Source: Lama glama
Lineage: Eukaryota
Reading direction: 5' to 3'
DNA: 64,000 bases
NCBI GenBank assembly: GCA_028534125.1
Contig: CM052816.1
Span: forward strand, 7,626,001 to 7,690,000
The notes beneath the pieces were generated by a model, which saw nothing but the letters and a program-made list of their open reading frames with translations, had not been told where the DNA came from and did no database searches. The translations under genes were made by a program, and so were the position numbers. Positions 36,601 to 57,600 of this stretch are shown piece after piece; position 1 is the stretch's first letter, and every line of letters begins with the position of its first letter.

Positions 36601-39600
36601 TCTCCTGTAAAGAGGAGTTGTTCCTTCTCCCCCATTTATTTATTTATTCATCTATTTCTTTCTATTAATACGGACTCAAGGATATTTATTTTGTTCTTTG
36701 GTTTATAATCCAACATAATCGCAATTTATTTTCTCGTTCACGTTTTTCCAGCTTTGGTGATAAGAAGCTTTTTCAAGTTGTCCCCTTTGCCCATGTGACA
36801 CGCCCATCTCCTTCTTAATATTATTCTGATGACCAAGCACTTCCTTACTTTCTGGCCCTGTAAGGTGTTTCCTACTCACTGTATTTTCCCTGCCCCAGCC
36901 CTGAAATTGACCACTTCTCCAAGGAGCCCTGTTTCTTTTAGTTGGAGAATGGCATTTAGAAACCAAGATCTGTGCTCACTGCCATTGCAGTGACATTGCT
37001 TTGGGTCCTCTGAGAGGTCAGAGCCAGGAAATCCATGTACTCATCACCCATGCACACACATCTTTATTTGTGTATCTTTTTAAAAAAAACATTAAAGAGC
37101 AAACATTTTGTAAAATGTTAAAAAAAAAAAAACATGTAACACTGGCCTCCTTGGCCAGAGGATTTTTGGCTGATGGGAGTGGAAAGGGAGGGCAGCTGGC
37201 AGTGCTTAGAGCTAGAGCCTGGGCAGGGAAAGAAGTGGCCATCGGGAGGAGGGGGAGGGGGAGGGAAGAGCCTAGGAGGCCCTGCCATCAGGGGTGGGGA
37301 ATAGTGATCTCCATGTCTTCTGGAGGCACTCAGTCATGGCTGGGATGTGTAGCAGTGTCCTGATGGGTGGGAGGGTACAGAGGCAGGAGACAGAGGGCTG
37401 GGTCTCAGGGCTGGGCAGCCTTAAAGAAGCACTGAATGGGTGAGAGAATTGTTACTTGAGGCTTTGCTGAAGGCACCTCTGTGCTTCTCCTCAGGCTAGT
37501 GTGACAGCAGGTAAAATCTCAGAGGTGGGGGCCTTGGGTGCAGCTGAGAAGAAGGTGAGGATGCTGGAGCAGCAGCGCACTGAGGTAGGTGGCTGGACGG
37601 GGTGGTGGTGGTCAGGAAACACCCTTCCTGCCTCCTGGGACCAGCGGGGCAAAGGCCTTCCTTGGCCTCCTGGCTCCAGCTAGTTCCAGGTCACTGTGAC
37701 CGGTTGCCATGGTGACCGCTGAGCCATCTGCCCACAGCTGAGACATGCTGCCTTGCCCTGGGCTCTTGTGTCTTGATCAGTCCCCCTGCCTACAGGAGTC
37801 ACTCTGAGGAGGAGGCATTTGGGACATGGTCTAAAATTGTTGAGGGGGTAATTTAGGAAGGCTCCTGTGGTAAACCCTGGATGGTGGAAAGAGGTTGTGA
37901 TAAGAGGCAAGTTTCTGCATCAGGAAAGGGGAGTCTGGAGTTCATCTGTCACCACACAGCTGGTTCAGGGAGAGACTGTCACAGACAGAGAGAGCCCATG
38001 CCTACTTGTAGCACTGCTTCTAATCAGCTGGGAGTCTGCAGAAGTTGGGGCTCTTCCCTTGTATCTCCTGCCTGTTCCTCCTCTGTCTCCCAGCGCTGGT
38101 ATTTCTGGACCAGGGTGGAGGCCTGGTCGTCTCTGTTCTCTGAGCCCCTCCTCTCCACACGGCTCAGGTGCTTGTCCAGTCCCTGGGCCTTTCTGCCCTC
38201 CCTGGTCCTCCAGCACATTTGAGAGTCAGTTTCTATTGATCTTTTGTTTATGTGCATATTTATTTTTATTTTATTTTTGTATTGCTGTTAAGATATTTTT
38301 TTCGATTACTTAAGTAATACAATGCTCATTATATAAAGATCGAGAGTCTCACTGGCTGGGGATGACCACAGCTGAAAAAGTTAATTGCATATGCCTCAAT
38401 TTTTGCTATGTACTTACTAGTGTATAATGTTTGTAAAAATGACATCACACCTACTGCATTACAGATTGCTTTTCCTTTCTTTTCTTAGAATTAACTCTGT
38501 CTTTGAGGATATTTATGTATCAAACATACTCTCTGTTCCTTTCATTCTGAATACTTTTTATCATATATTAACGTTTCTGAAATTGGAATACCCTTTCCCA
38601 TTGTTTCATCTATTTAATGTGTTAGGTTCTTTCTTCTTCCCTGAAGGATTGCTGTTATATCAAGATTATGGCAAATAATTAGTGTCATCCTAGAGCAGAG
38701 GCAATGTATTAGACACTTGACTTTCTGAAGAGCTCCCCAGTCCTCCCTTCTCTGTTTATTCTATAATTTCCTTAACTTATTTCCAATGCTCACGTTGGCC
38801 CCTAGGTTTTCTTGTTTTTTGCAATATAAACATTGCTGAGATGATCAGCAGTGCCCGTATTTCTTACACAGCTGTTCAAGTGCTTCTCTTGGTTACGTTT
38901 TTCAGAGTGGAATTATTTGGCTAAAGAGAAGCAGAACTTGATGTTTTAATACATGGTCCCATATTGCCCTGTACATGGGTGTGTGTTCCATAATTCTAAA
39001 CCAAAACTGTGTACTGCTTCTGTGCCTTGGTGCTAGTCTTCCTTTCCTGGCAGTGGTAAAATGTGGTGGTTGATAAAAGTGACTCCCTTTGAGGAAGGTG
39101 TTTGAGAAGCGCAGGATGGAGGCAGTGTGCGTAGCCGCCGTCCACACACGCTCCATGCACCTGGGAAGCTGGTGTGGGTGGAGTTGGCTCTCTTTGGTCC
39201 TTCTCTGCTCACCTCCTGCCCACCCCAATGTCTTCCCCGCAGCTGCTGGAAGTGAACAAGCAGTGGGACCAGCATTTCCGGTCCATGAAGCAGCAGTACG
39301 AGCAGAAGGTAGCGTGGGGGTGACGGGAACTCAAGGCTGGACCCCTGCTTCTCAGCTGGGCTCTTGGGGCCTCCCCAGCGTTCTGCACGCTGCTTCCCTC
39401 ACAGCAGCCATTGAACCTTGGACATTCACCCTGGCCCTCACACGCTCTGTCTCTCTGCCTCTGAACCCAGATCACCGAGCTGCGCCAGAAGCTGGCGGAC
39501 CTGCAGAAGCAGGTGACTGACCTGGAGGCTGAGCGGGAGCAGAAGCAGCGTGACTTTGACCGCAAGCTCCTCCTGGCCAAGTCCAAGATTGAAATGGAGG

Positions 39601-42600
39601 AGGCAAGTGTGACTGCTGGCTCTGCAGGTTCAGCTCCGGGGGCCTGCTCTCCCCTCCCGTCATCCTGGAGCTCAGTGGAGTCGACATGCAGGGATGGGAG
39701 GCAGGGACCGGGCTTCCGGCTCTGGCTCTCGTGCTCAAGGGCTGTGTGGCCCAAGGCAAAAGCACATCCCTTCCCGGTGCCTCAGTTTCCCATCTGAAAA
39801 CTGAGGGGCTTCAATTAGCTATTCTTTTCTTTTTTTTTTTTCTTGTTTTCATACAGAAGAGCTTTTTGTTCGATTACAATCTTTAGGGAACTCTAGAGGG
39901 AAGCACGAATGTAAAAGGGATTCAGCAGACTCTGTTACACTTGATGGGGTGGGTGCTCTGGGTGTTTCCCGTGGGGTCTGCTGTTTGTGGGGGAGGGGCT
40001 CCAGCACTAGACAAGCTCCCTTTCGTCATTCTCCTAGTCACTGTTCAGCAGATCATGCACCGGCGCTGTGCTGGGCACAGAGACTCAGCGGTGACAGTTC
40101 AGTCCTTCTCTTGGGGGAAGAGATGTGGAATGTTTAATTACAGAAGCGGATGAATAGAAGTGTGTTAACTATGGCACAGGAGAAATTACAGGGATCAGGG
40201 AGAGGGCATAAAGGGGGACTGGATTCATTCTTGGGGGGTGCCCAGGGGCAGGTCCCCTGAAGAAGTAGCATCTGATCTGTCTTATGAGTAACTGACACCA
40301 ACCAAGGCCCTTCAGGAAAAGCCATTTGGCCTCCAGACTCTGGAGATTTTATTTATGCCACGATGTCTTCTCCTTCATGAGAACTGGGCATCGGCCGGGC
40401 TTTTCCCTGACTTAGAAATGGCCGTTTCCAACATAGGCCGCATTTCAGAGTTCCCTCCCGTCAGCATGTGACACCCAGGGGCCTTATCGCCCAGCCTGCC
40501 TTGATGACCGCCCCGTGCCTTGGAGAAGCATGTTTGGGAGGACACTGCCTGTCTTTTCTCACAAGTACACAGTCACACCTTGGCCTGTCAGCCGGGCCCG
40601 GGCTCACACCGGATGTGAGACAAGTCCCTGGCACCAGTACTTCCCTGTCAGCTGGGGGAAAGGTGGGATGTTTCACGACGAAGTGTGGCCCTGTGGATAA
40701 GGATGCATGGTGACAGAGGCCACATTGACCCGAGAGCCTCTTAACTGGGGAGTCAGCAACGACTCCCACAAGATGGGACCAAGTCTGCCCTGAGTGATCT
40801 CTGGCTGGAAGCACCTCACCAGCTAGCTTGCAGAATATCACGCAGGGCTGGGATGAAAACAAACCCCTGTGGCCACCTCCTAGTCCACATGCTGTGAATA
40901 CATAGGTGTGAAATGTCCACATGACACAGATACAGTGAGAGGTTCCCTGGACCATCTCCCCTCATCACCTCCATCCCCCAGTTCCAGGCCCTCCCCAGTG
41001 GTAACCACTGTACCATTTCGGTGTGTCTTTCTCGGCCTCTTATCTCTTGTACACACAAAAGTAGACGGTTTAATGTGGGGGTGCAGCGTGCTGCCCTCTT
41101 CTATTTTAAACAATTCCTTTGGCTTGCAAGGGGGGAGAGAGCCCCGGAATTAGGAGACCTGGGTTCTTGCCTAGCCCCAGCTACTGTGTAGCTTGAGTAA
41201 GTCACTGCCCCTCTCATTTCCTGTTGTAGAAAAGGGCTAGGACTTGATGCCCTCTAAGGGCCATTCCAGCTGTGGCTCTTTGCAGTGAAGCACTTTGATT
41301 GTTCCATAGTAGGTATGGAGCCAACGCTTCCACCTTGAAGCCTGCCCTGGTTTCTTTTCAGCTTAGTGTTCTCTCTGTAACCTCACGGTACTTTGCTTCT
41401 CTGTGCAGGAACCCTTTTTGCCTTATGCTGTGTTTATTTCTTTGAGGGCCTTTTCTCCTCTGGGCTCAGAGACCGTAAGAGCTGAAAGGACCTTTGGAGA
41501 CCTTCAGTTTATCACTTTCTGTGCATCATAGAAGACCCCTGTGTTAATCTGGTGGAAAGTATGGCTTTTTTCTCTAGAAAGTTGCACAAAATTTTGCTCT
41601 TAGTTTGGGAGCTCACGGACCTCCCGAAGCCCATCCATGACTCATGTTATGAGCCCCTTGTCCATGGCAGATAGGTGAGCTTAGGCGAGAAAGGGCTGTG
41701 ACAGTGCCTGAGGGCTCAACTCGCTGTGAGAGGAGCCAGTGGCGGAACCCAGGGCCTTTCACTCAGCTGAGCAGCCTCTTCCTTGAAGACAGAACTGTGC
41801 GGACATTACCGCTCTCACCAGAGCCTTGTGCATGAAATCTTGGGGACTGCGGGGTGAGAGCGAGGAGAGGCATGGCTGCGTGTGGGGTGGGGCAGGCAGT
41901 CAGGAGCCCAGGCCCGCTGCTTACCAGCCCTGTGTTCCCTGCAGACCGACAAGGAGCAGCTGACAGCAGAGGCCAAGGAGCTGCGCCAGAAGGTCAAGTA
42001 CCTGCAGGATCAGCTGAGCCCGCTCACCCGGCAGCGGGAGTACCAGGAGAAGGAGATCCAGCGGCTCAACAGGGTGGGCATCTCGGCCCTGCTCCGTGAG
42101 GAGGCCAGGCTTCCCCAAGCCCTGCTGCAATGCCCGCCCTATGGCAGTGTCCCCGGACCCTCAGCTCAGGAGGGCTGATTCCTGGGTCAGGGCGCGGGCG
42201 CTGAGAGCCTCGTTGCAGCCCCGTGGTCCTCACCATCTGTCTTCCCACTCCCGCATGCTGAGCCGGTGCTCGCTCCCCTGCAGGCCTTGGATGTGCTATT
42301 CGCCCCCAACGTGCCGCCTGCTCATTGTTCAGGTTTCACTTTAGTGCTGCTTCCCCTGTGAGGCCTCCCTCCCCACTGAGTCTCCTTTGGGTCCCCCTGC
42401 CTCCCTGTTCCATGTGCCTAAAGCACCAGCAGCTCCTTTCACACCCCTTCCAGCACTTCCTTGTGATGGTATCTTGATGGTCTGTCTGCCCGTCCAGCAC
42501 TGGGAGGTGTGCGTCTTCACCAGGGCACCACCCCGGCATGTGCTCAGGAAAAGCTTGCTGAAGGGGATGGATGAGCACAGGCTGGGGTTCCTGCCCTTGA

Positions 42601-45600: not shown

Positions 45601-48600
45601 CCTCCCCGCCCCTTCAGGTGAAGATCTTTGAGGAGGACTTCCAGAGGGAGCGCAGCGACCGGGAGCGCATGAACGAGGAGAAGGAAGAGCTGAAGAAGCA
45701 GGTGGAGAAGTTGCAGGCCCAGGTCACCCTGTCGAACGCCCAGGTGAGAGCAGCTGGACCACAGAAGGGGCAGCTGGCTGTCCTCGTGGGGCGGGGGCCC
45801 TGGGTTGGAAGGTCCCTGGTGAGACTGGATGTCAGGACACTCACTCATTCTCCTTCCAGCTCTGCTGCCACATTTCTCTGTCCCTCAGAGAGGCTCTTCC
45901 TTTCTCTGACCTCTAGCTCTGATTTTCCATCATCAGTTTTGATGCCTTAAAAGGGCAAATTTAGAAATTAACTCCGAGCCACCCACTCTCCCCCAGATTG
46001 GAACCAAAAGGTATTAATATGGAAGCCCTCCTGACCTGTGTTCAGACTACGTACAAGGAGCAGGCCTTACCTGCGGGCTGCACTCCGCACCCCCCCGGGC
46101 CCTTTCCCGGGGCTGGGCCAGGCAGGACAGCCCAGAGTGGAGGCCTCGTGCATTGGCCGGTCAACCCTGGGGCTGGTTAGGCCTGGATCCAGGCCTGGCT
46201 AGGAAGTGCCTGTGCCAACAGTCTTCTCCCCTTCCCGCCTTCTCTCAGCTAAAAGCCTTCAAAGATGAAGAAAAGGCGAAAGAAGCCCTCAGACAGCAGA
46301 AGAGGAAAGCAAAGGTGAGGAGGCTTGAGGGAGGAAGCAGCATTTAGCTTGTCTTACCTTCTCCTGGAAGCTACAGTCTGATGGGAGAGGTGTTGTTTGC
46401 ACAGGTGTCCAGCTCACTAACGAGGTAATGCAGGCAGAGCTTTTAGAACAGTGCTTGGTATAGAGTAAGTGCTCGGGACGCATTAACTGTCATCATGGTT
46501 GATGCTCTGTGCCGTGTGCCAGCCTTCTATGCCCACGTGCCAGTCTTCAGAGAACTGAGATTCTAAGTAGAGGTGGGGAGGTCGGATGGGTGTCACTGGG
46601 GATGGCTTGTGCAGCCTGTCACAGCCCAGAACCAGATGTCAGTCTTTCTTGCAGACCTCAGCAGACCGCTACCACGTGGAGCCCCACCCGGAGCACCTCT
46701 GCGGGGCCTACCCCTACGCCTACCCGCCCATGCCCCCCATGATGCCGCACCACGGCTTTGAGGACTGGTCCCAGATCCGCTACCCTCCTCCCCCCACGGC
46801 TATGGAGCACCCGCCCCCACATCCCAACTCACGCCTCTTCCATCTGGTGAGTCTGTGCCCCTCCCTCCCTGCAGGACACGCACAGACCACCCGGACACAC
46901 TCCAGAGGGCAAGGGCAAGGGCAAGTGCCGGGTCAGAAAGCGCATCCTTGGCCCGGCCCATCTGAACAGCACTGTGGGGTGCGGCCTGCTGTGCAGGGGC
47001 AGGACTTCCAGCCCCGGGCTGCTCTGGGTCACTGGTGTGGGACAGAAGAGGCCGAGGAAGGGAGCGGGGCAGGAAGGAGGGCTCCCTCCAACCAGCCAGG
47101 CCCAGGGCACCAGAGCACGTGACCTCCACCTGTGACCAGGTGCCAGGCCCCCACCAGCCATTCTCTCCCTTTGCTTCTCCTTCTCTTTTCCCTTCTCAGT
47201 TTCCTTTCCTTTCCTCTTTTCTTCTTTTTTTTTTTTTGCTTTTTTCCCCCTTGCTTATCATTTCTGTCCCCAGCGAGCTGCTGTCACACATCCCATCCTC
47301 TCTGGTGCCTCTGCCACAGCCCCTTCAGGCTTTCCCACTCTTACCCGGACAACAACCACTGCCTCCAGTCCGGCCTCTCCCCCAGCTTCTCAACCACAGC
47401 CATTCCTTCCACGCATCTTCTTTAAACACTGGAGTATCGTGTGGAACTTAAGCGATCTGCTCTGGGGTTATGAAGACCTGGGCTCAAATCAGAGCTTGTC
47501 TACTTGCCTAGCTGGACAAACTTCTTCAAGTTACTCAACCCCTCTGAGCCTCAGCTTCCTTTCCTGTAAAGTGGGGGTGGCAACCTGGGTTGTTGTAAGG
47601 ACTCAGTGATACTTGATTAATGTGGACTTAGCACTCTTCCTGCACAGTGGCTGCTACCATACTTTTCCAGTATGGTTTTTGATTACTAAGCGCCGGTTTT
47701 GTTGCAGCCAGAATACACCTGGCGGCTGCCCTGTGGAGGGATACGGAATCAGAGCTCCCAAGTGATGGACTCGCCCGCAGCCAGGCCTGCAGAGCCAGGT
47801 GAGCCGGATCCCCTGGCCCTGGGTCTTGTCTTCCACCGGGGAAGACCATTCTTAGCTGCCAGGGTCGCCCCGGTTTGGGGACGCTGTTGCTACCTCCTGA
47901 TCTGGTTGGAAGATAGGCCCAGCTTTCTGAAGCAGTCTTCTCAGAAGGGGATGGTGACTGCAGGGCGAGGGGATTGAAACCATTCCTTCATTCATTATAG
48001 TTTACCGTCCACCTGCCAGGCACTGTGCTGGCCAGGACAGAGCAGAAGCAGATACGGTCCCCACCCTTATGACCTTACTGTCTACTGAGGAGCACAGAAA
48101 TGAACAGTAAAGGTCACACCAGTGGGCGTACAATTGCACTCAAGCACCCTGGGGGAGGAAGAGCAGATTTCTGTGAGAGCGGACAGCAGGGGAACCCGGC
48201 CCAGCCTGGAGGCACTGGCGTTTGTGTTGAGACCCTCGGAATGAGCAGCATTAATGAGTGAAGGAGAAGCAGAGGATGTTCTTGCAGAGAAAGGACAAAT
48301 GCAAAGGCTTCAGTGGGAGGGAGTGAGGAAGTGTGGCCGACTTGAGGCTGGAGAGAAGGTTGGTGTGGCTGGAGCCGGGAACAAGGTCGGGGAGGAGATA
48401 GGGGCAAGGCGAGGAGGTCAGGGAGGTCGGCGGGTCCCGGCCGTGAGGGCCTTGCAGGCCACGACAGAAGGCTGGTCGTTATCCTAAAGAGGATGTGCAG
48501 GCCTTGGGTATTTTAAAATCAGAGTGGCATGACAGGTTAAATTTGCATTTTAAAAAGCTCCCTTTGGTCATGGTATCCGCCATAAACAGTTGGGGACTGG

Positions 48601-49374
48601 AGGTCTGTTTGCTAGTCATGAAAGGACCCCGGGCCCTTAGTCGCTCTGTTCACTTTCTGCGAGGCTCTTGTGGGGCAGAAGGCACTGCCTGGCCTGTGGG
48701 GCTTCTGGGAACAGGATTGCGTCTAGCGGCTAGGCGATAGGGAGGCCAAGTCCATCTCAGCAGAAAGAGGAGTTTTGAAAGCTGTGCAGAAATGGAGCCA
48801 GCTCTGCCAGGAGGTGGAGCGCCTGCCGCAGGAGGGGTGTGAGCAGAGGCTGCAGGGCGACTTGGAGGGAGCGTGGTTTGGAGGAGCCAGTGGTTGGAAG
48901 GCTGTGTTGGGTTGATCAGTCATTTTTCTAATGGTTCCTCGCAAAGTCCTGGAGGTTCTGTGGCGCCCCTTGGAGGCTGCTTTGATGAGGACACAGGGTG
49001 GCCAGATGGGCAGGGCTGTCCCCTCCCTAGAACTACTCCGCTTCGGGGTCCAGAACCGACTGACTAGGCTCCAGCACTTCCTAGACCTGGGGCTTCAGGC
49101 AAGTTCTTTAAAACCTCTCTGTGTCCCTGTTCCCTCCCCCATAAAGAGATGACAATCTGCCTGCTTCCTAGGGCCAGGGCAAGGATTGAATGGCAAACGT
49201 ACCTATGGCACTTTGCCCAGGGCCTGGCACACACCCAACAACCCTGTTTTTCTCCACTCTTACTCTGTTGGTTTCCACAGGACTTTGAAACCTACTGCAC
49301 CACATCATCTTTAAGTCCTCAAAATTTTTGTTTATTTAGAGTCTACCAAAAATGACCACGAGGGGCCTCAGTGA
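21508..49374 (+). CDS. TNIP1: TNFAIP3-interacting protein 1 (ABIN-1/Naf1), spliced CDS of 17 coding exons, 1905 nt / 634 aa
   Basis: Exons join in frame from MEGRGPYRIYDPGG to ESTKNDHEGPQ*. Exon lengths 136,135,86,81,192,95,121,90,66,132,129,132,126,66,192,91,35 sum to 1905. Contains LIR EFEVV, AHD1 EALSIQ..LLRKQEL and the UBAN motif DFQRERSDRE. Confidence 0.97.
22802..22936 (+). CDS. TNIP1: TNIP1 coding exon 2
   Basis: (G)ELLEESQMEASRLRQKAEELVKDSEPLPPPSPSLASFDHLAELT; ccccAG acceptor, ACAG|GTAC donor. Confidence 0.95.
24308..24393 (+). CDS. TNIP1: TNIP1 coding exon 3
   Basis: (G)KDADVPAPPADPARPCDKPEPIPKPPSS; tctccAG acceptor, GTAAGT donor. Confidence 0.93.
25816..25896 (+). CDS. TNIP1: TNIP1 coding exon 4 (LIR motif SSEFEVV)
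   Basis: GTSSEFEVVPTEGHSPPESSGRTRDTT; ctgcacAG acceptor, GTGAGT donor. Confidence 0.94.
26358..26413 (+). repeat. Imperfect (CA)n microsatellite in a TNIP1 intron
   Basis: cacacacacatgcacacacacacgcacatacacacatgcgcacacacgcacacaca. Confidence 0.85.
28245..28436 (+). CDS. TNIP1: TNIP1 coding exon 5
   Basis: YLGPLPHEDSNLMLHLQRLETTLSVCAEEPDRSQLFMHLSRMALEFNRLASKVHKNEQRTSILQ; GTGAGG donor. Confidence 0.95.
31955..32049 (+). CDS. TNIP1: TNIP1 coding exon 6
   Basis: TLCEQLRKENEALKAKLDKGLEQRDQAAERL(R); CG|GTGAGT donor. Confidence 0.95.
32420..32616. mobile_element. MER5-family DNA transposon fragment
   Basis: GTGCATCAAGACCACC...CTGCATTTTCC...CACTTGAGAAGCACTG. Confidence 0.5.
33647..33767 (+). CDS. 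TNIP1: TNIP1 coding exon 7
   Basis: EENLELKKLLTSSGKDGASGQPGSPKLEGAGKKEVAPQPQ; CAG|GTATGT donor. Confidence 0.94.
35830..37010 (-). mobile_element. Old L1M-type LINE 3' fragment
   Basis: AT-rich 1.2-kb block with TTTGTATTTTGAAATAACTTTAAACTT, TCCAGGACCCCCCATTGCATTTAGTTGTCATGT and CCACTTCTCCAAGGAGCCCTGTTTCTTTTAGT motifs typical of L1MB/L1MC 3' ends. Confidence 0.65.
37495..37584 (+). CDS. TNIP1: TNIP1 coding exon 8
   Basis: ASVTAGKISEVGALGAAEKKVRMLEQQRTE; GAG|GTAGGT donor. Confidence 0.94.
39243..39308 (+). CDS. TNIP1: TNIP1 coding exon 9
   Basis: LLEVNKQWDQHFRSMKQQYEQK; AAG|GTAGCG donor. Confidence 0.95.
39471..39602 (+). CDS. TNIP1: TNIP1 coding exon 10 (followed by a GC donor)
   Basis: ITELRQKLADLQKQVTDLEAEREQKQRDFDRKLLLAKSKIEMEE; donor GAG|GCAAGT keeps frame with the next exon (TDKEQL). 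Confidence 0.92.
41945..42073 (+). CDS. TNIP1: TNIP1 coding exon 11
   Basis: TDKEQLTAEAKELRQKVKYLQDQLSPLTRQREYQEKEIQRLNR; AGG|GTGGGC donor. Confidence 0.95.
44289..44420 (+). CDS. TNIP1: TNIP1 coding exon 12 (AHD1 region)
   Basis: ALEEALSIQASPASPPTAFGSPEGAGGLLRKQELVTQNELLKQQ; CAG|GTGAGG donor. Confidence 0.95.
44768..44861 (+). mobile_element. Short tRNA-derived SINE (same family), nested in an older element
   Basis: GGGGGAGGGTAATAGCACAGTGGTAGAG...GGTCCTGGGTTCAATCCCCGGTACCTCCA + poly(A); flanking AGTAACT duplicated. Confidence 0.82.
45618..45743 (+). CDS. TNIP1: TNIP1 coding exon 13 (UBAN ubiquitin-binding core, DFxxER; Asp472 codon at 45636-45638)
   Basis: VKIFEEDFQRERSDRERMNEEKEELKKQVEKLQAQVTLSNAQ; CAG|GTGAGA donor. 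Confidence 0.97.
46249..46314 (+). CDS. TNIP1: TNIP1 coding exon 14 (basic, NLS-like QKRKAK)
   Basis: LKAFKDEEKAKEALRQQKRKAK; AAG|GTGAGG donor. Confidence 0.94.
46655..46846 (+). CDS. TNIP1: TNIP1 coding exon 15 (Pro/Tyr-rich)
   Basis: TSADRYHVEPHPEHLCGAYPYAYPPMPPMMPHHGFEDWSQIRYPPPPTAMEHPPPHPNSRLFHL; CTG|GTGAGT donor. Confidence 0.95.
47708..47798 (+). CDS. TNIP1: TNIP1 coding exon 16
   Basis: PEYTWRLPCGGIRNQSSQVMDSPAARPAEP; ttgttgcAG acceptor, CAG|GTGAGC donor. Confidence 0.93.
48000..48575 (+). mobile_element. L2 LINE relic (one of several, e.g. ~1360-1700, 10490-10960, 20270-20620, 31430-31660, 61760-62400)
   Basis: CATTCCTTCATTCA...TGCCAGGCACTGTGCT...TTTGCATTTTAAAAAGCTCCCTTTGG pattern. 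Confidence 0.55.
49340..49374 (+). CDS. TNIP1: TNIP1 last coding exon, proximal acceptor (alpha-type C-terminus)
   Basis: tttgtttatttAG acceptor; (E)STKNDHEGPQ-TGA. Confidence 0.9.
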
Positions 49375-49413
49375 GACCAGATTACGTCACTTGGCTCCAC
49401 CTTCGTCTTACAG

Positions 49414-49445
49414 AGCCAGCTGACTTCAGACTACCGAAAAACTAG
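49414..49445 (+). CDS. TNIP1: TNIP1 alternative last exon, distal acceptor (beta-type C-terminus, 633-aa isoform)
   Basis: ccttcgtcttacAG acceptor in the same phase; (E)PADFRLPKN-TAG resembles the human isoform ending PADLRLPRN as I recall it. Confidence 0.8.
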
Positions 49446-50087
49446 AGGCCACGTGCTCTGTGTGGCCAGAGCCTCCAGGAGGCTGAGATGGATGGCCAAC
49501 TTGTGCTCTGGCCCCAACCCGAACTGTTTCCAGACTGGGGAGGCTCCATCCAGAAGGCATCCGTCCGGGCCTCTCCTTTGGAGTGATCGGGAAAAACTCA
49601 CTACTCTGCCACTGAGTGGAGAGAAGCGTCATGTGGCCTTGGCCTGCCATCCTCTGCAGGAGCTGCCGGGGGATGTCAGTCTTTAGTGGGGTGCAATCAA
49701 GACCCCTTCGTTTCAAAACTTCCCCAGAAGTGTTTCAGCAGCCCCTCTGGGGACCACATTCAATTCATGTGTTTTATTTTTGCTTCAAGCTCTGCTGTAG
49801 CAGGACCTGCCCCATGCATACCCTCTCTACTCCGAGGGGCTGCGGGAAGAGCAGGTTTGCCTCCAGGAGCAGAAGAAAACCACGAGTCATCCTGCTGCTG
49901 GGCCCCCGCCCATGGCAGCCTCACCAGTGCCACTGCAGCCCGGGATGAAGGCCATCCCAGCCACATCTGCCAACAGCCCCAGCCTGAAGCTGCCAGGCCC
50001 TCGGCCTGTAGCTGGAGGCCTGTGGTCCCGGAGGCCTGGATTGGGGTGGCTCTTGATCCCTGGGCAACTGTTTGCACGAATCTTGGA

Positions 50088-50093
50088 CATAAA
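50088..50093 (+). terminator. TNIP1: Candidate TNIP1 polyA signal, variant CATAAA
   Basis: I saw no AATAAA/ATTAAA downstream of the stop; CATAAA is followed ~20 nt later by a GU/U-rich tract (ttttgtgactggtgttcttt). Confidence 0.55.
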
Positions 50094-50506
50094 TCCAAGT
50101 TGAAGATCAACATTTTGTGACTGGTGTTCTTTGATGCCCTGGCTAATGTTCCCCTCCCAGTCAACCAGAGTGTGGCTTTCCTGTTGCCTCCCTCGGTGCT
50201 CTGTTCCTCCCAGACCCCCTGAGAGCATCACCATTACTCTTGGCAGATGTCTCCTGGGGCCCTGCTCAGAGCCGCCACGAGCGCTGGGCGTCCAGGGCCT
50301 GGGAGTCAGGCAACCTGGATTTATATTCGGTCCTTCCCCTCACTTGTCAGGAGACCTTGGACAAGGCCTGGCCCTTCTCTGAGCCTCAGTTTCCTCATCT
50401 GTCAAACGAAACCACCACATCTCAGCCCTAGCTGCCTTAGAGAATGGTGGGATGAGAGGAGACGTGGACTGGTCTTATAAACTCCAAATGCTGACCGAGG
50501 AAGCAG

Positions 50507-50590
50507 AGCAGGCCTAGGTAGAAACCAAAAAGCAAGGGTCCAAAGCACTGCCTTCATTTTGTTTTCTCTTCTCCTCCCTGCCTCCCGCCC
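50507..50590 (+). repeat. Left arm of an ~84-bp inverted repeat (partner 53429-53511)
   Basis: AGCAGGCCTAGGTAGAAACCAAAAAGCAAGGGTCCAAAGCACTGCCTTCATTTTGTTTTCTCTTCTCCTCCCTGCCTCCCGCCC equals the reverse complement of 53429-53511 apart from 3 substitutions and 1 indel. Confidence 0.93.
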
Positions 50591-50648
50591 TCACTGGCGC
50601 AGCCGCTTGAGGAAGCACCACAGGAGGCTGAGCTGCTGCAGAAAGGCC

Positions 50649-50654
50649 TTTACT
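50649..50654 (-). terminator. GPX3: Candidate GPX3 polyA signal, variant AGTAAA
   Basis: Minus strand CCT-AGTAAA-GGCCTTTCTGCAGC, ~120 nt after the SECIS; I saw no canonical AATAAA in the 3'UTR. Confidence 0.65.
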
Positions 50655-50769
50655 AGGCACACAGGGATGAGTCTAACGCCAGTGGGTCAGGGTGAGGGGA
50701 GAGGGCACGTCCTCCGAAGGAGCGGGGGTGGCATCCCTGCCCGGGGGCTTCAGCCTGAATGCACTAAGG

Positions 50770-50845
50770 GCTGGCCCTTCAGACAGGCTCAAGGGAGGCC
50801 CGCCCACTAGGGCTTCGGGCCCCTCCTTCATTCAGATGCCGCCTC
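50770..50845 (-). promoter_or_regulatory. GPX3: SECIS element (type II) in the GPX3 3'UTR
   Basis: Minus strand reads AUGA(50831-50828)-AGGAGGGGCCC-GAA-GCCC-UAGU-GGGC-GGGCCUCCCU-UGAG(50791-50788): AUGA/GA core, helix II, unpaired AA and an apical mini-stem. Confidence 0.92.
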
Positions 50846-51467
50846 TGACCTGGCGAACGTGGTCCTCGCTCTCACAGCTGCCTTGGCCACTCTCAGGGAA
50901 CACTGTGGGGTGGGTAGGGGGCTTGGGAGGGCCCTCAGGAAGGAGAGGAGGGAGGTTGGGCAGTGTGGCAGACCCAGAAGCTTCCAGGCACTTCAGTGTT
51001 GGTGTTTAGAGGCAGTGGGGGATGCTGGCGCCAAGGGTTGACGTTTAGGTAGGAGCAGAACAATTGAATCTAGAGCTGGTTTTTTCCTTTGGGCTCAGCT
51101 GAAAGTGAATTGGTATCATTGGAACAGAGAGCCGGAGAGAAAAGGGAGTTATTCTCTGGTACTCTCCACGGCATACAGCTGTGGGCACACAGACAGTACA
51201 CATTCCTGGATATTCGTGCAGGTCAACACATATGGCTGTACACTCACATGTGTGCACACACGGTCACACACACCCATAGGCATAGAATGCAGACACCCAC
51301 GTGCACAGCAGTACAGACACAATCGTATGCGCACATTCCTGTCAGGCTGGGGCTTTGTGTAACAGGGTCTAGAGTGGGAGTGTGGTGTGGTTGGAGAAGT
51401 GGATTCCTTCCTGCACAGGGTCCTCCCCAGCCCCTGCACGGTGGACATAGGTTGGGGTGGGCCTCAG

Positions 51468-51689
51468 TTACTTCCCCTTGGCCTCCAGGGCCGCCCGCCG
51501 CCGCATGTAGGCCAGGATGTCCATCTTGACAGTGTTGACCGTGGTCCGGTGGTACCAGCGCATGATGGGTATACCGTCTGGCCCCACCAGGAACTTCTCA
51601 AAGTTCCAGCGGATGTCGTGGACCTTCATGGGTTCCCAGAAGAGGCGGCCAGGTGAGCCCAGGAGCTCCGAGGTAGGAGGACAGGAGTT
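51468..51689 (-). CDS. GPX3: GPX3 exon 5 coding part
   Basis: [76 protein letters not shown]. Confidence 0.96.
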
Positions 51690-54600
51690 CTGGAGCGGGC
51701 ATGAGAGTAACGTTAGCCCTGCTTGGGGCCCCTCCCACTGCCTCCCTAGGCCTTTTTGTGGGTAGGGGAATAGCCTGGCACTGGGAAAGAACACCAGTTT
51801 CAGAGTTAGAAAACTGAATCCCAGCCCTGGCTCTAGCAGATTGTGAGACCCTAAGCTTGTCCCTTTTGGGGCCCACCTGTAAAACGGGCTGGTGAGACCC
51901 TAAGATCTGCAAAGCTTTCTAGCTGGAATAACAATCAGATGCCAAGAAATTCCCCAGGAGCCCAGGAGCAGAGGAGGTTGGCACGGCCCTTGCCTACATG
52001 GGCTGGAGCCAGGAGCAGCTGCAGCCCCGTCCAGAGCCAGCATCCGCCGGGCAGAGAGGCTCCTACAGAGCTGGCTGTGAACTCACCTTCAGGAATGTGT
52101 AGAACTTCTGCTCTTTCTCCCCGTTCACATCCCCTTTCTCAAAGAGTTGGAAGTTCGGAACGAAACCCCCACCTGGTCGGACATACCTACAAGGAATGTT
52201 CTTATGTGGGTCCCAGGAAGATGGGCACAGGGCTCAGAAATGAGAGGAAGGGCTAGAACAGGGGAGGGGTGTTGGGAATCCGTGAATTTTGCTCTATAGT
52301 GGGCAGTGGGAGCTGATGAATATTGAGTGGGCAGAGGCATAATGTGGGTCTGCAGTCTTTTTCCAGTTTGGTACTGTCTCAGTCACCCCTGGCCCGCACT
52401 GTCCTCCCTGACCCTGGTCATGCAGTCACAACCAGTCATCCCTGTCCCTGTCCCTCTCCTGTCCCTCTTCCACTCATTCCACTAATCGGGGTTCCTGGAA
52501 GGGGACAGTAGTTCTTGGTGGTGTCCATCATGAGTAGGGGTCAGTGCAAGAGATGCCCAGAGCCTGGGCTGGGGGGCAGGGTGGGATGTGCTAGCGGAGC
52601 CTTCTCCAGACACCGAGCGAGCACTCACTTGAGACTGGGTAGGATCTCCGAGTTCTCTCCTGGTTCCTGTTTTCCGAATTGGTTGCAGGGGAAGCCCAGA
52701 ATGACCAGACCAAATGGCCCCAGCTCTTCCTGTAGTGCATTCAGTTCTGGGCCAGGGAGGGAGAGAGCAGAGATGAGGGGGTAGCCTGGCACGGAGCCCT
52801 GCCTGCCATGTACCACTCCACCTGTTCACCCACTGTACAGATGACATCACTGAGGCCTGACGGGAAGAGACTTGCCCAAGATCCCCCAGTGAGTGTGGCA
52901 ATGCTGGGACTCAAGTCCCAACCTCCCGGTTCCAACGTGGCTGGGCTGGAGGTTGGGGGTAAACAGCAATACGCTTCCTCGTCAGTAGTCAGTCGCCCGC
53001 CCATGGCCAAGGTCCACCCCGTGGCCCCGCAGGCTGAGGGCTCCTTCAGGCCTCTCAGGATTGAGTTTCCTGGAGCAGGAACCAGACAACTTCCCCAGGG
53101 TGGGGTGGAGTGGGCCCTCACAACCCTCCTCTACTCAGAATTCAGGAATCCCAGGGAGGTCGTGCCCAGCTCCCCAGATCACTTTGCCTGCGATTCTCAA
53201 CATTCTGCGTCAGACTGCCTTTGCCTGCCCCCCACCCCCACTAGCAGACTGTGCTCAGCCCCAAAGCACTTTCTTGTGGGTGCTGTCAGGTGCCTTTGGC
53301 TTGGCTATTCCCTCAGGCTTTTAACTCTGCCCCAGCTAGGGAGAAAGGAGTGAGGATACTAGGGATCGTGAAACCTGGGGGAAATGCCCGGTTCTGCCAC
53401 GAACACACATACTCTCAGGCCCCTGCTGGGGCGGGAGGCAGGGGGAGAAGAGAAAACAAAATGAAGGGAGTGCTTTGGACCCTTGGTTTTTGGTTTCTAT
53501 CTAGGCCTGCTTTCCAGGGTCCAAGAGAAGCACTAAGGCAGATGGGGCCGAGGGCAGGTGAGAAATTCTCAGCAAGCTAACGCTATTATTTCTTACTCCA
53601 GTGAAAGGCACAAACCCAGTCTCCCCCATCCCTCTGCTTTTAGGGCTGTTGAGGTGCCCAGGGATGAAGGGTAACTGAGAATCTTCTAGTACACGTTTGA
53701 AGGCGATCAGACTTCAGGCTTATATAATCATTTTCACAGAACCGTGGAACACAGCGGAACTGGGATACAGGGTTTGGAATCTCATGATCACCTTACCCCT
53801 TCCGCCTTGCACCAGAAAAGCTCCTGTGACTGGAATGTACCCAACTGGCAGAAGCAGCCCCAAATAAAGCAGGGGAGGAGGGATGGGCTCTTACCAATGT
53901 ACTGGCTTGTCAGGCCTCAGTAGCTGGCCACGTTGACAAAGAGGATGTATTTGCCAGCGTAGTGCTTAAAGGGGATGTACTCCTCCCCATCGATGGTGAG
54001 GGCTCCGTACTCGTAGATGGTGCCGCTCGCTCCAGTGTGGCAGTCCGTCTGGAGCAGAAGCCAGGGAGCGGTCAGAGCGGGAAGGGAACTTGGACGCCAG
54101 TTTTCAGGATAACAGGGAGAGGTGAAACTGACTTGCCCAAACGGTCTTGACTCGCGCAAGACCACTCCAAGAATTAGAGCTGGACTAGCACTGAGGTCTC
54201 CTAATTGCTCGTATAAGATAATAATTTTGAAAGCACTTAATAAGCTGGTGAGTGCTATGGAAACTTGGAGAATTACTCACTACGGCCATTATACTTCTGG
54301 GCTACACATCAATTAATCAATGTTCAGCAGGCAGGTTCTGAGGGAGACGACCGTGATGCTGGTGGTTGTGTTCTTGGATGGGCTGGTGGAGACTGCCTGG
54401 GGGGCTGTTGCAATGACGCAGGCAGGTGATGATGGGAGCCTGAACTAGAGCATTGTGAGGAAGAACCGAACCGAAAGGAGGAAGCAGCAGTATGGAGAGT
54501 GGTGATTCAGAGGTTCCAAATNNNNNNNNNNNNNNNNNNNNNNNNNNNNNNNNNNNNNNNNNNNNNNNNNNNNNNNNNNNNNNNNNNNNNNNNNNNNNNN

Positions 54601-57600
54601 NNNNNNNNNNNNNNNNNNNNNNNNNNNNNNNNNNNNNNNNNNNNNNNNNNNNNNNNNNNNNNNNNNNNNNNNNNNNNNNNNNNNNNNNNNNNNNNNNNNN
54701 NNNNNNNNNNNNNNNNNNNNNNNNNNNNNNNNNNNNNNNNNNNNNNNNNNNNNNNNNNNNNNNNNNNNNNNNNNNNNNNNNNNNNNNNNNNNNNNNNNNN
54801 NNNNNNNNNNNNNNNNNNNNNNNNNNNNNNNNNNNNNNNNNNNNNNNNNNNNNNNNNNNNNNNNNNNNNNNNNNNNNNNNNNNNNNNNNNNNNNNNNNNN
54901 NNNNNNNNNNNNNNNNNNNNNNNNNNNNNNNNNNNNNNNNNNNNNNNNNNNNNNNNNNNNNNNNNNNNNNNNNNNNNNNNNNNNNNNNNNNNNNNNNNNN
55001 NNNNNNNNNNNNNNNNNNNNNTTCAGCAGGCAGGTTCTGAGGGAGACGACCGTGATGCTGGTGGTTGTGTTCTTGGATGGGCTGGTGGAGACTGCCTGGG
55101 GGGCTGTTGCAATGACGCAGGCAGGTGATGATGGGAGCCTGAACTAGAGCATTGTGAGGAAGAACCGAACCGAAAGGAGGAAGCAGCAGTATGGAGAGTG
55201 GTGATTCAGAGGTTCCAAATCTGGAGGACTGGAAAGCTGAGGCTGTTGGTGTAAAATAGGGAAGTAGGACCAGGGCCAGGACTGGGGCCAGGACCCGGGC
55301 GAGGCCTGCCGTGAGGATTTGCTGTTGGTCACGGTGAAGCCCCAGTGCCCAGCAGGTGTTCCTGGTAGGTGAGTAATTGTGACGATGACCATGATGCCTC
55401 TTCTTTGCCTAACTGCTGCTCCAGAACTCGTCCGGATGGTGTACAATGGACTGCGTGTTAGGGGACCTGGATTCCACGTCCAGCTCTGCCACTAAGTTCC
55501 TGTGTGGTCTTGGCTAACCCTTGCTCTTCTCTGGGTCTAAGTTTTCTCATTTTTAAAGTGAGAACCTTGAACGGGACCAGCTATTCTCCACGATGGCTGG
55601 ACAGCTTCCCTCTCAGTGGAAGAGGAGGGGATGGATTACTGCTAGCAGGCGGGATACTGCCTTTGCCCCTACTCAACCTCTGCCTTGTCTCTACCATTTT
55701 TGGTACAGACTCCAAAAATCTGGGTCTACTCTTGAAAGGGTCTCATGGCATCAGTACCACAATCAGCAGGTGGGTCAGTTGTGATGAGGAAGGAAAAAGC
55801 TTGCCAGCCCTGTATCAGAGGATCTCTAAGGTCCTTTCTGGCCCTGCCATCCGATGACTGGTATAAAAACAGTGAACAAATCGAGTGCAAACTAGCAGCA
55901 TAGCCCAGGAGAGGCAGAGACAGGTGGTTGGAATTAGAGAAGCAAATTCACGCCCTTTCTTCCCATCAAGTCTGGAAATCCTGTCATCAAGGCAGGACAC
56001 CTGGGCCCAACTACGTGAAGCGTGAAGCATGAAGCAGGCTGGCAGGGCGGGGCCCCAGGAGGGTGTAGAAAAGCAGCCTCTGTCTTAAAGATGCTGCAGC
56101 CCTGTTGAGCTAGAAGAGGCTGGGCTCCCTCAACAAGGCCATTCGCTGACAGCCGCAAGCTCTCCTCTTGGCTCAGGTACGTAGTCCCTGCTTTATGTGA
56201 GTAATACTCCATGCCCCGTGACTTGTGGTGGATGCTGGAGGCAGGCCTGAGCCCTAAGCTCAACATTCCTCCAGCCCCTGAGCCTCCTTGGCCCTGGCGG
56301 CAGGGGTCAGTTCCACCTCCACATACAAACAGCCGGGACACAACCAACACACCCCAGCTGGCCACAGACGTCTAGCAGCCAGAAAGCAAGGCCTTTTGCG
56401 TGCCTCTCCACCCCCTCCACTCTGCCTCACCCGAAAACTGTGAAATGGGGAGAAAAAAGCCAAGAGGTTGCTCAAGTAATGGGAGCTCGGAAGCTTGTAA
56501 ACAGCAGGACGATCAGCTTCTGAGCAGTTTCGGGGGGAGTGGCGGGGGTGGAGGGTCAGGGGAATCTCCTCTCATTAGATTTGAGCCTCTGCTGGCTGTG
56601 TGGCCCTGGGCAGTCATTCTCTGCGCCTCCATCTGCTGACAGGTGAGGATAATATCACCTGCCTCCCAAAATGGCTGTGAGAATTTGCTAACAGATCAAA
56701 ACTGTCTTGAAAGCCTCCTGGAAACAAATCCCCCCATTAAGGGATAGTGAGGATTCTGCCTGAGGCCAGGGTAAAGGGTCCTGACGTCCCTACCTTGTTG
56801 TGAAGAGGAGAGGTGATCCTCTTTGATGTTCCTCAGCCAGTATGAAGACGATGATGCTCTGGGCAGGGTGTCTCCAGGAGGAGATGTGTGACAAAGCCTC
56901 CACACTTTCTACTGGGGCCAGTGCTGTGAGTTCAGACTGGGGTGGGTCAGAGGGTACCCAAGGTGGGGGAAGCCATGGCCTGCGTTCACCACCGAGCGTG
57001 CAGCCCAGTCCTTATGGGAGTCCGCTTCCCTCTCCTGGGCCCAATGGAGTCCCAGAGCCGTTGCACCTTAACCAGGAGGCCAGAGGGGGAGGAAGGGACA
57101 GGTAGTGAGGGTGCCTCAGTCCTCCCACAATTGGACAAGATAGGTGAGTTCTGATGGCTTAAAAGTGGGAGTGGGGACCCAGCCAGGACCCCGGCTTGAG
57201 TTGCTGGTCCTGTCTCTTTCTCCTCACCCACCCTACCACTCCCATCAACGTGAAGGTGTGAAAGGAGAGCTAGACTGGGGGCAGGAGCCCTGAGTTCTGG
57301 GTCTCTGATCCTGTGTGACCACTCCTGTGCCCTCTTTGGGGCTCTGTTTCCTCCACTGTGAGATGGCGTCAGATTCAGTGCTGTCTTAAGGGCTCCTCAG
57401 CTGACTGTCAGCCTGTGGTTCCATGATTCTCTCTGCCTGGTTTAGTCACCTAGAAACCAGCAGTTACTAGGATCCCACGCACGTCAGCAGTTGTTACTCT
57501 CTCTAGCCTCCGCAAAGTCCTTTTGTAGAGGAAGGACAGGGAGGCCGGGCAGCCTTAAGCTGGACTGGAGAGCAGACGCAGCAAGGAAAGGATTCCTTTT

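Follow-up and report, generated by a model that had tools for sequence, protein, structure and literature searches.

Inverted SINE pairs, of which IRAlus are an example, form dsRNA that is edited by ADAR, or promote back-splicing. In primate genomes, template switching is documented to create new inverted repeats in a single step (Loytynoja and Goldman 2017, PMC5453318), and inverted templated insertions occur as inherited human germline variants (MMB-TI; Osia et al. 2021, PMC8421209), the template search of that study having reached no further than 100 bp from the insertion. On the RNA side, long-range pairings in human genes have been associated with A-to-I editing and with 3′ ends (Kalmykova et al. 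2021, PMC8052449).

The case dealt with here is a pair of inverted sequences at the gene for the selenoprotein GPX3. The inverted copy looks young and neutral, as if DNA repair or replication had produced it by accident, and not like a device for coupling splicing to 3′ end formation. More specifically, that the pair arose some 10 My ago by a locally templated inverted insertion and has drifted neutrally since is given a probability of about 60%.

An inverted repeat at GPX3

In the window (the whole 64-kb stretch of DNA that was analysed), positions 50507-50590 of the plus strand are matched in reverse complement by 53511-53429. The two arms, of 84 and 83 nt, are 95.2% identical over 84 columns by both blastn and pairwise alignment (E 2.7e-33 to about 1e-30 in local blastn), and the spacer between them is 2838 nt. 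Their differences comprise three substitutions (50518 G/A, 50532 G/C and 50550 G/C) and a 1-nt indel (50575). The longest identical run common to both is 24 nt, and all 31-mers of the arms are distinct. The near-perfect inverted repeat of ~84 bp reported in the initial annotation is thereby confirmed by blastn, pairwise alignment and a repeat search of the window, and so is its remark that the arms are far better matched than the old repeats around them, with MIR pairs at 72-85%. The arms are as follows.

Arm A: 50507-50590, no strand assigned; 84 nt in the GPX3-TNIP1 intergenic space, probable template (source) copy
Arm B: 53429-53511, no strand assigned; 83-nt reverse-complement copy in GPX3 intron 2, probable derived (inserted) copy

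The repeat search of the whole 64-kb window yielded no other inverted pair with its members up to 6 kb apart, and a third copy of the 84-nt unit is absent from the 64 kb, even when 3 mismatches or a word size of 7 are allowed (positions 49311-49346 were left out of the repeat search, and of the Rfam scan considered below). Anchored alignments of the flanks are no better than those of random pairs (p 0.29 and 1.0), so the unit is sharply bounded. Faint extra similarity just outside the arms was also considered and is not significant against random pairs.

GPX3 is on the minus strand, with exons 1-5 collinear on that one strand. Its exons were mapped singly, and the search with the exon 5 ORF retrieved incomplete GPX3 proteins of several genera, Capra, Ovis, Myotis and Manis among them, together with Logan ORFs. 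The features relevant to the position of the arms are listed here.

GPX3 exon 2: 53895-54048, minus strand; Sec codon TGA at 53919-53917
GPX3 intron 2: 53894-52747, minus strand; carries arm B
GPX3 exon 3: 52629-52746, minus strand
GPX3 exon 4: 52087-52186, minus strand
GPX3 exon 5, coding part: 51468-51689, minus strand; TAA stop at 51470-51468, with the 3′ UTR continuing to about 50630
SECIS candidate in the GPX3 3′ UTR: 50776-50839, minus strand; Rfam SECIS_1, 22.6 bits (gathering score 35)
AGTAAA: 50649-50654, minus strand; the sole hexamer of poly(A)-signal type near the end of the GPX3 3′ UTR
MIR core and 3′ part: 50296-50420, minus strand; adjoins arm A and is outside it

This exon mapping agrees with the placement originally proposed. 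Arm B is in intron 2, 383 nt past the 5′ splice site and 682 nt ahead of the 3′ splice site; the upper end of arm A is 59 nt past the AGTAAA hexamer and ~40 nt past the expected cleavage site; and exons 3-5, as well as the SECIS candidate, are between the two. With one arm intronic and the other past the cleavage site, neither is present in mature GPX3 mRNA.

Repeat-family identity of the arms

The window has ~50 MIR cores, and these were the source of MIR profiles built from the window itself. Neither arm is matched by the full-length or by the 5′-only profile (window MIR copies without locus A), and beside arm B there is just one 3′-MIR-like stretch, of 2.9 bits. Inspection by eye had suggested arm A as the missing 5′ end of its neighbouring MIR, or else a MIR interrupted by arm B. 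Flanks joined with the arm removed were also compared against the window alone. The profiles were unsupportive, one shuffle test (arm A) was ambiguous, and the idea was set aside. In a scan with Rfam covariance models, miRNA precursors among the families considered, neither arm had a hit with an E of 1 or less. In the sense that there is no Rfam or MIR-profile match, the arms are, as first described, not a recognisable repeat.

Transposable element hallmarks sought in the arms were also absent: they have neither long terminal inverted repeats nor a tail of poly(A) or simple-repeat type, and a target duplication is not present at each of the two copies. For an ORF across arm B, protein collections contained no relative, its own locus being missing from them too, and a search of this kind has no power for non-coding DNA such as this. 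Folded singly, the arms give imperfect and weak hairpins (-18 to -26 kcal/mol), with a notable z in one of the four folds (arm B minus strand, z -3.6). An imperfect hairpin in each arm is neither needed nor explained by the simple copy model set out below.

Potential pairing in nascent RNA

The arms could pair if both were on one nascent RNA, the duplex being predicted at -153.4 kcal/mol in the GPX3 sense and at -163 kcal/mol in the TNIP1 sense. As had been noted, the alignment of the arms places an A:C mismatch in the GPX3-sense duplex; the other irregularities are two C:C mismatches and a bulged A, and in this sense the arm differences are plain mismatches, not wobble-preserving changes. The initial annotation had envisaged a long-range duplex that couples splicing to 3′ processing. 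Its feasibility is borne out by the predicted energies in both senses, but the coupling itself finds no support in the plain mismatches, the distance of the U/GU-rich tract from the hexamer, the RNA word shares or the junction signature. As to the word shares, RNA runs contain 0.23-0.24 and 0.41-0.42 of the words sampled from a 5.9-kb stretch around the arms. Mature GPX3 exons alone are expected to account for 0.24 of it, and the upper values are those expected when some 1 kb from the 3′ end of TNIP1 is added to the exons. Since the shares match mature exons, the contigs give, on this rough reckoning, no hint of RNA from intron 2 or from beyond the poly(A) site.

Downstream elements of poly(A) sites act within ~40 nt of the cleavage site. 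The U/GU-rich tract of arm A (50546-50521) that had been proposed as such an element is 103-128 nt after the end of the hexamer at 50649, which is too far, and the proposal fits poorly with a ~40-nt zone. A nearer GU-rich tract, CCUGUGGUGCUUCC, is at 50624-50611, outside arm A.

Junction signature and proposed origin

On the GPX3 strand the intronic copy is bracketed by two occurrences of the same 6 nt.

AGCAGG, first: 53506-53511, minus strand; opens the arm B unit on this strand, arm A starting with the same 6 nt
AGCAGG, second: 53422-53427, minus strand; one base beyond the end of arm B

The chance of such a direct repeat bracketing arm B, estimated empirically, is 0.19% per configuration, or about 1% once the four inspected configurations are allowed for, and the AGCAGG concerned is itself part of the unit common to both arms. 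Inspection of the sequence at arm A found no direct-repeat bracket there. Such a bracket is what would be expected of a switch to another template and back that used junction microhomology, for which it is suggestive and not proof. Its presence at the intron copy suggests that arm B was copied from arm A.

In the event envisaged, a DNA end located in intron 2 of GPX3 would have switched, while the DNA was being replicated or a break repaired, to a template 2.8 kb off, just downstream of GPX3, copied about 84 nt of it as reverse complement and then returned to intron 2. Arm A would be the probable source and arm B the probable insertion, and the intron 2 site before the event would read ...CTGGAA(AGCAGG)GGCCTGAG... 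on the GPX3 strand. The three substitutions and one indel would be later drift between the copies, and suggest an age of roughly 10 My, the margin of error being wide. Sharp ends, youth and the flanking 6-nt direct repeat together fit a mutational accident. From these features of the sequence we infer the mechanism, polarity, age and neutrality of the pair; the insertion is also likely to be lineage-specific.

Rearrangement of another type was also considered. An inversion with duplicated breakpoints is ruled out by the collinearity of GPX3 exons 1-5 on one strand. The earlier suggestion that the arms might themselves mediate inversion does not hold up well, 84 bp at 95% identity being a poor substrate for homologous recombination and the product one that would break GPX3.

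Alternative explanations

The arms might instead belong to an interspersed repeat, of low copy number or unrecognised (e.g. a small hairpin-like element), that happened to land twice in the same neighbourhood, and the imperfect hairpin in each arm, particularly that of the arm B minus strand, is in keeping with such an element. This is nevertheless unlikely: the 64 kb contains no third copy, and the arms show neither terminal inverted repeats nor a poly(A) tail, nor target duplications at both sites. Moreover, two members of a rare family would hardly be expected to have identical ends and to have landed less than 3 kb apart. The two arm patterns also had 0 matches in metagenome contigs (both patterns) and in prokaryote-genome and viral contigs, though this counts weakly as those collections hold little mammalian DNA. 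It is quite unlikely that the pair is instead an older inverted duplication, with the arms kept alike by occasional gene conversion and the 95% identity understating its age. Arms just 2.8 kb apart, and with an identity far above that of the surrounding MIR pairs, are what conversion might leave, but the similarity stops abruptly on either side, without the fringe of decayed homology that might surround a converted core, and 84 nt in which the longest identical run is 24 nt would be a poor conversion substrate. That the assembly placed a spurious inverted copy is the least probable of the explanations: there is a sign of imperfect assembly nearby, a 199-bp exact duplicate flanking a 500-N run, but 14 DNA runs, labelled with four organism names, contain 92-95% of the words sampled from the 5.9-kb stretch, and arms that differ at 4 sites and have no 31-mer in common are unlike a collapsed or mirrored read.

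A different type of explanation is that the duplex was selected, arm B in unspliced intron 2 pairing with arm A in uncleaved RNA so as to modulate cleavage, splicing or read-through, or to be an ADAR substrate. A predicted stability of -153 kcal/mol is very high, delayed cleavage would leave both arms within the GPX3 transcription unit, and in human genes long-range pairings are reported to be associated with A-to-I editing and 3′ ends (PMC8052449). However, mature mRNA contains neither arm, the distance of the U-rich tract from the cleavage site is too great for a core downstream element, the word shares in RNA runs fit mature exons only, and the junction signature indicates a mutational origin. 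Such selection is very improbable, and on the sequence at hand no selected function for the pair is expected. Equally little credence is given to later co-option of an accidental copy, in which a nascent GPX3 duplex would form before cleavage and alter 3′ end formation, read-through antisense to TNIP1 or removal of intron 2, which directly follows the Sec-UGA exon, and would be hyper-edited by ADAR.

Implications

The best reading of the pair, as a locally templated inverted insertion, is that it is of little consequence for GPX3 biology and adds a further fossil to those left by template switching or by break repair from a template. From a broader perspective, templated copies of this type make, in one step, a ready 80-bp dsRNA in pre-mRNAs, and so are raw material for long-range RNA structures. 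Since its selenoprotein gene is highly expressed and the pair is clean and of probable polarity, the GPX3 locus would be a convenient natural test of whether a new duplex has any effect. Co-option, if true, would mean that a long-range regulatory RNA structure had arisen within one lineage at a time that can be dated.

Comparison with known systems

As with IRAlus-type pairs, two inverted copies a few kb apart could give a long, near-perfect intramolecular duplex. The GPX3 arms, however, are not a SINE, and as the last GPX3 exon is without a donor site, back-splicing around exons 3-5 is not expected. PCCRs (PMC8052449) are a further parallel, in that two distant complementary boxes within one transcription unit would enclose exons and a poly(A) site in the loop between them, and the arms have the stable complementarity that characterises them (predicted -153.4 kcal/mol). 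PCCRs are, though, defined by evolutionary conservation (PMC8052449), which is unlikely for the GPX3 pair given its youth, and one GPX3 arm is beyond the terminal cleavage site.

The MMBIR-type events classed as MMB-TI (PMC8421209) are closer. At GPX3 there is likewise a reverse-complement copy of nearby sequence with discrete ends, and a short duplication or microhomology at the junction, AGCAGG at 53511-53506 and 53427-53422, that is suggestive without being proof. The MMBSearch working definition has the template within about 100 bp (PMC8421209), whereas the distance here, 2838 nt, is far beyond that search range, and the GPX3 event is, as far as can be told, fixed or old and not polymorphic. 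In the case of template-switch mutations of the four-point model (PMC5453318; Walker et al. 2021, PMC7954356), the published events are local or short-range, in contrast to 84 nt from 2.8 kb away. Yet they are alike in what would have happened and in what results: one event generating the reverse-complement copy of a nearby stretch, and with it a new inverted repeat that can fold as RNA without selection being needed (PMC5453318, PMC7954356).

Inverted repeat and its setting

Local blastn of each arm with its 30-nt flanks against the window aligns arm A (50507-50590, between GPX3 and TNIP1) with its reverse-complement copy in GPX3 intron 2, arm B (53511-53429), over 84 columns at 95.2% identity (E 2.7e-33), and gives each arm a single partner. 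Pairwise alignment resolves the differences into three substitutions (plus-strand arm A base first, then that of reverse-complemented arm B: 50518 G/A, 50532 G/C and 50550 G/C) and one 1-nt indel at 50575. Plus-strand arm A has G at all three substitution sites. A repeat search recovers the pair too and, within its 6-kb limit, no other inverted pair in the whole window; the near-perfect inverted repeat of about 84 bp reported in the initial annotation is confirmed. Self-comparison of the window, which that annotation had proposed as a check, also recovers it: at E 1e-10 there are two hits only, the arm pair and a 199-bp exact duplicate around a 500-N run, and relaxation to E 1e-3 adds just a handful of old-repeat matches at 72-85%. 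The pair thus far exceeds what chance would give and differs clearly from the sequence around it.

GPX3 (minus strand) and TNIP1 (plus strand) are convergent genes. GPX3 exons were placed individually with partial GPX3 proteins from a protein search, and splice sites were read in the sequence.

GPX3 features, with the adjoining MIR, and the basis of each placement
around 59568-59476, minus: GPX3 exon 1 (protein match and splice-site reading)
54048-53895, minus: GPX3 exon 2, Sec TGA at 53919-53917 (protein match and splice-site reading)
53894-52747, minus: GPX3 intron 2 (splice-site reading)
52746-52629, minus: GPX3 exon 3 (protein match and splice-site reading)
52186-52087, minus: GPX3 exon 4 (protein match and splice-site reading)
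51689 to the TAA at 51470-51468, minus: GPX3 exon 5 (protein match and splice-site reading)
50296-50420: MIR adjoining arm A (window-built profile)

Among the named protein hits, partial sequences from Capra and Ovis are closest to the exon-5 peptide (95% identity), consistent with a cetartiodactyl; Myotis and Manis reach 87%. AGTAAA at 50654-50649 is the sole poly(A)-type hexamer near the end of the GPX3 3′ UTR; neither AATAAA nor ATTAAA occurs near the GPX3 3′ end, the weak AGTAAA variant being used. A SECIS candidate (50776-50839, minus; Rfam SECIS_1, 22.6 bits, below the gathering score of 35) sits about 120 nt upstream of the hexamer. Arm B lies 383 nt past the intron 2 donor and 682 nt ahead of the acceptor, while arm A starts 59 nt past the hexamer; exon mapping, hexamer and Rfam match thus uphold the earlier description of the arms as bracketing exons 3-5, the SECIS candidate and the hexamer.

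Since the plus strand of 47800-50700 has no AATAAA or ATTAAA outside 49311-49346, the 3′ end of TNIP1 is expected within those positions. TNIP1 also has a family of 40-nt direct repeats (GAGCTG...CTGCAGAAGCAGGTGA) at 39477-39516, 41978-42017, 45666-45726 and 48799-48838. At least the 45666-45726 copies are inside an exon stretch reading ...EEKEELKKQVEKLQAQV..., and similarity among coiled-coil coding segments, not a DNA-level feature, probably explains the family.

Repeat, artefact or older duplicate

That the sequence common to the arms is an unrecognised low-copy repeat is unlikely. No third copy occurs in the window, even at word size 7 or with 3 mismatches, and the failure of the initial annotation to recognise a known repeat is matched by the lack of any hit to either arm from window MIR profiles or Rfam families. 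Some 50 MIR cores are present in the 64 kb (iterated nhmmer), and two ways of assigning the arms to neighboring MIR copies were dropped: arm A as a continuation of the MIR adjoining it (window-built profiles made without the arm A surroundings match neither arm), and arm B as splitting another MIR (its flanks, joined without the arm, align to nothing across the junction). One shuffle test on this question was ambiguous. Weak negatives come from collections that hold hardly any mammalian non-coding DNA: two arm patterns have 0 matches in metagenome contigs, one has 0 in prokaryote-genome and viral contigs, and the protein collection contains no relative of an ORF that spans arm B. At blastn E 1e-3 no two places in the window have a younger interspersed repeat in common; in repeat content the window is unusually quiet for a mammalian gene region. 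Each arm alone is an imperfect hairpin of modest energy (GCAGG...AGAAACCAAAA...AAGGG / CCCTT...TTTTGTTTTCT...CCTGC); of the four strand versions, only arm B in GPX3 orientation folds more stably than every one of 200 shuffles (z -3.6).

An older duplicate kept alike by conversion is slightly less probable again. Least credible is an assembly artefact: 14 DNA runs, carrying four organism labels, contain 92-95% of the words sampled from 48200-54100, an interval-wide figure that argues against a gross assembly error but does not single out the arms. The 199-bp, 100% identical duplicate (54323-54521 and 55022-55220), which flanks the N run at 54522-55021 in GPX3 intron 1, looks like overlapping contig ends joined with a gap.

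Potential for an RNA duplex

The initial annotation proposed that pairing of the arms couples GPX3 splicing to 3′ processing. Computed duplex energies are -153 kcal/mol in GPX3-sense RNA (mismatches A:C, C:C and C:C, and a bulged A) and -163 kcal/mol in TNIP1-sense RNA (G:U, G:G and G:G, and a bulged U), the single-arm hairpins being far weaker at about -21 kcal/mol; the A:C mismatch is present as described. Pairing is kinetically conceivable because polymerase may move beyond the poly(A) site before intron 2 is spliced out. The U-rich tract of arm A, likened earlier to a downstream poly(A) element, is 103-128 nt beyond the hexamer; the arm does not include the GU-rich tract (50624-50611) that is found at the usual distance. 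Mature GPX3 mRNA has both arms removed. Of the words sampled from 48200-54100, RNA runs contain 0.23-0.24 or 0.41-0.42, shares that, on a rough reckoning, fit mature transcripts only, since mature GPX3 exons account for 0.24 of the interval and about 1 kb of TNIP1 3′ end would supply the remainder. Human genes are known to have long-range pairings tied to editing and to 3′ ends (PMC8052449), and such pairings are defined by conservation. Nothing here speaks for selection on the duplex, and a selected role for it is very improbable. Inversion at the DNA level, also suggested earlier, is poorly served by arms of 84 bp at 95% identity whose longest identical run is 24 nt, and its product would break GPX3.

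Probable origin by local templating

A young, neutral, locally templated inverted insertion is the most likely explanation, with a probability of roughly 0.6. Arm A would have served as template and the insertion would be arm B in intron 2, the inverted patch being generated by a template switch and return, or by microhomology-primed synthesis during break repair. The ends of the shared unit are sharp, border-anchored flank alignments scoring no better than random window pairs. On the GPX3 strand arm B starts AGCAGG (53511-53506), with a second AGCAGG one base past its end (53427-53422), a bracketing repeat found at 0.19% of random positions; arm A likewise starts AGCAGG but is without the bracket. 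A discrete reverse-complement patch of this kind, with a short direct repeat around one copy that matches the other copy's edge, is the trace expected of either such event.

Divergence between the arms is 3 substitutions in 83 sites (3.6%), split between the two copies, which at usual mammalian neutral rates suggests an order-of-magnitude age of 10 My; as only three events are counted, the true figure could lie anywhere between a few and several tens of My.

In primate genomes, template switching is documented to create new inverted repeats and hairpins in a single step (PMC5453318), and inverted templated insertions are found as inherited variants in people (PMC8421209), though in those events the template is much closer than the 2838 nt that separate the arms here. 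A templated inverted insertion at this site would be an ordinary member of a known mutation class.
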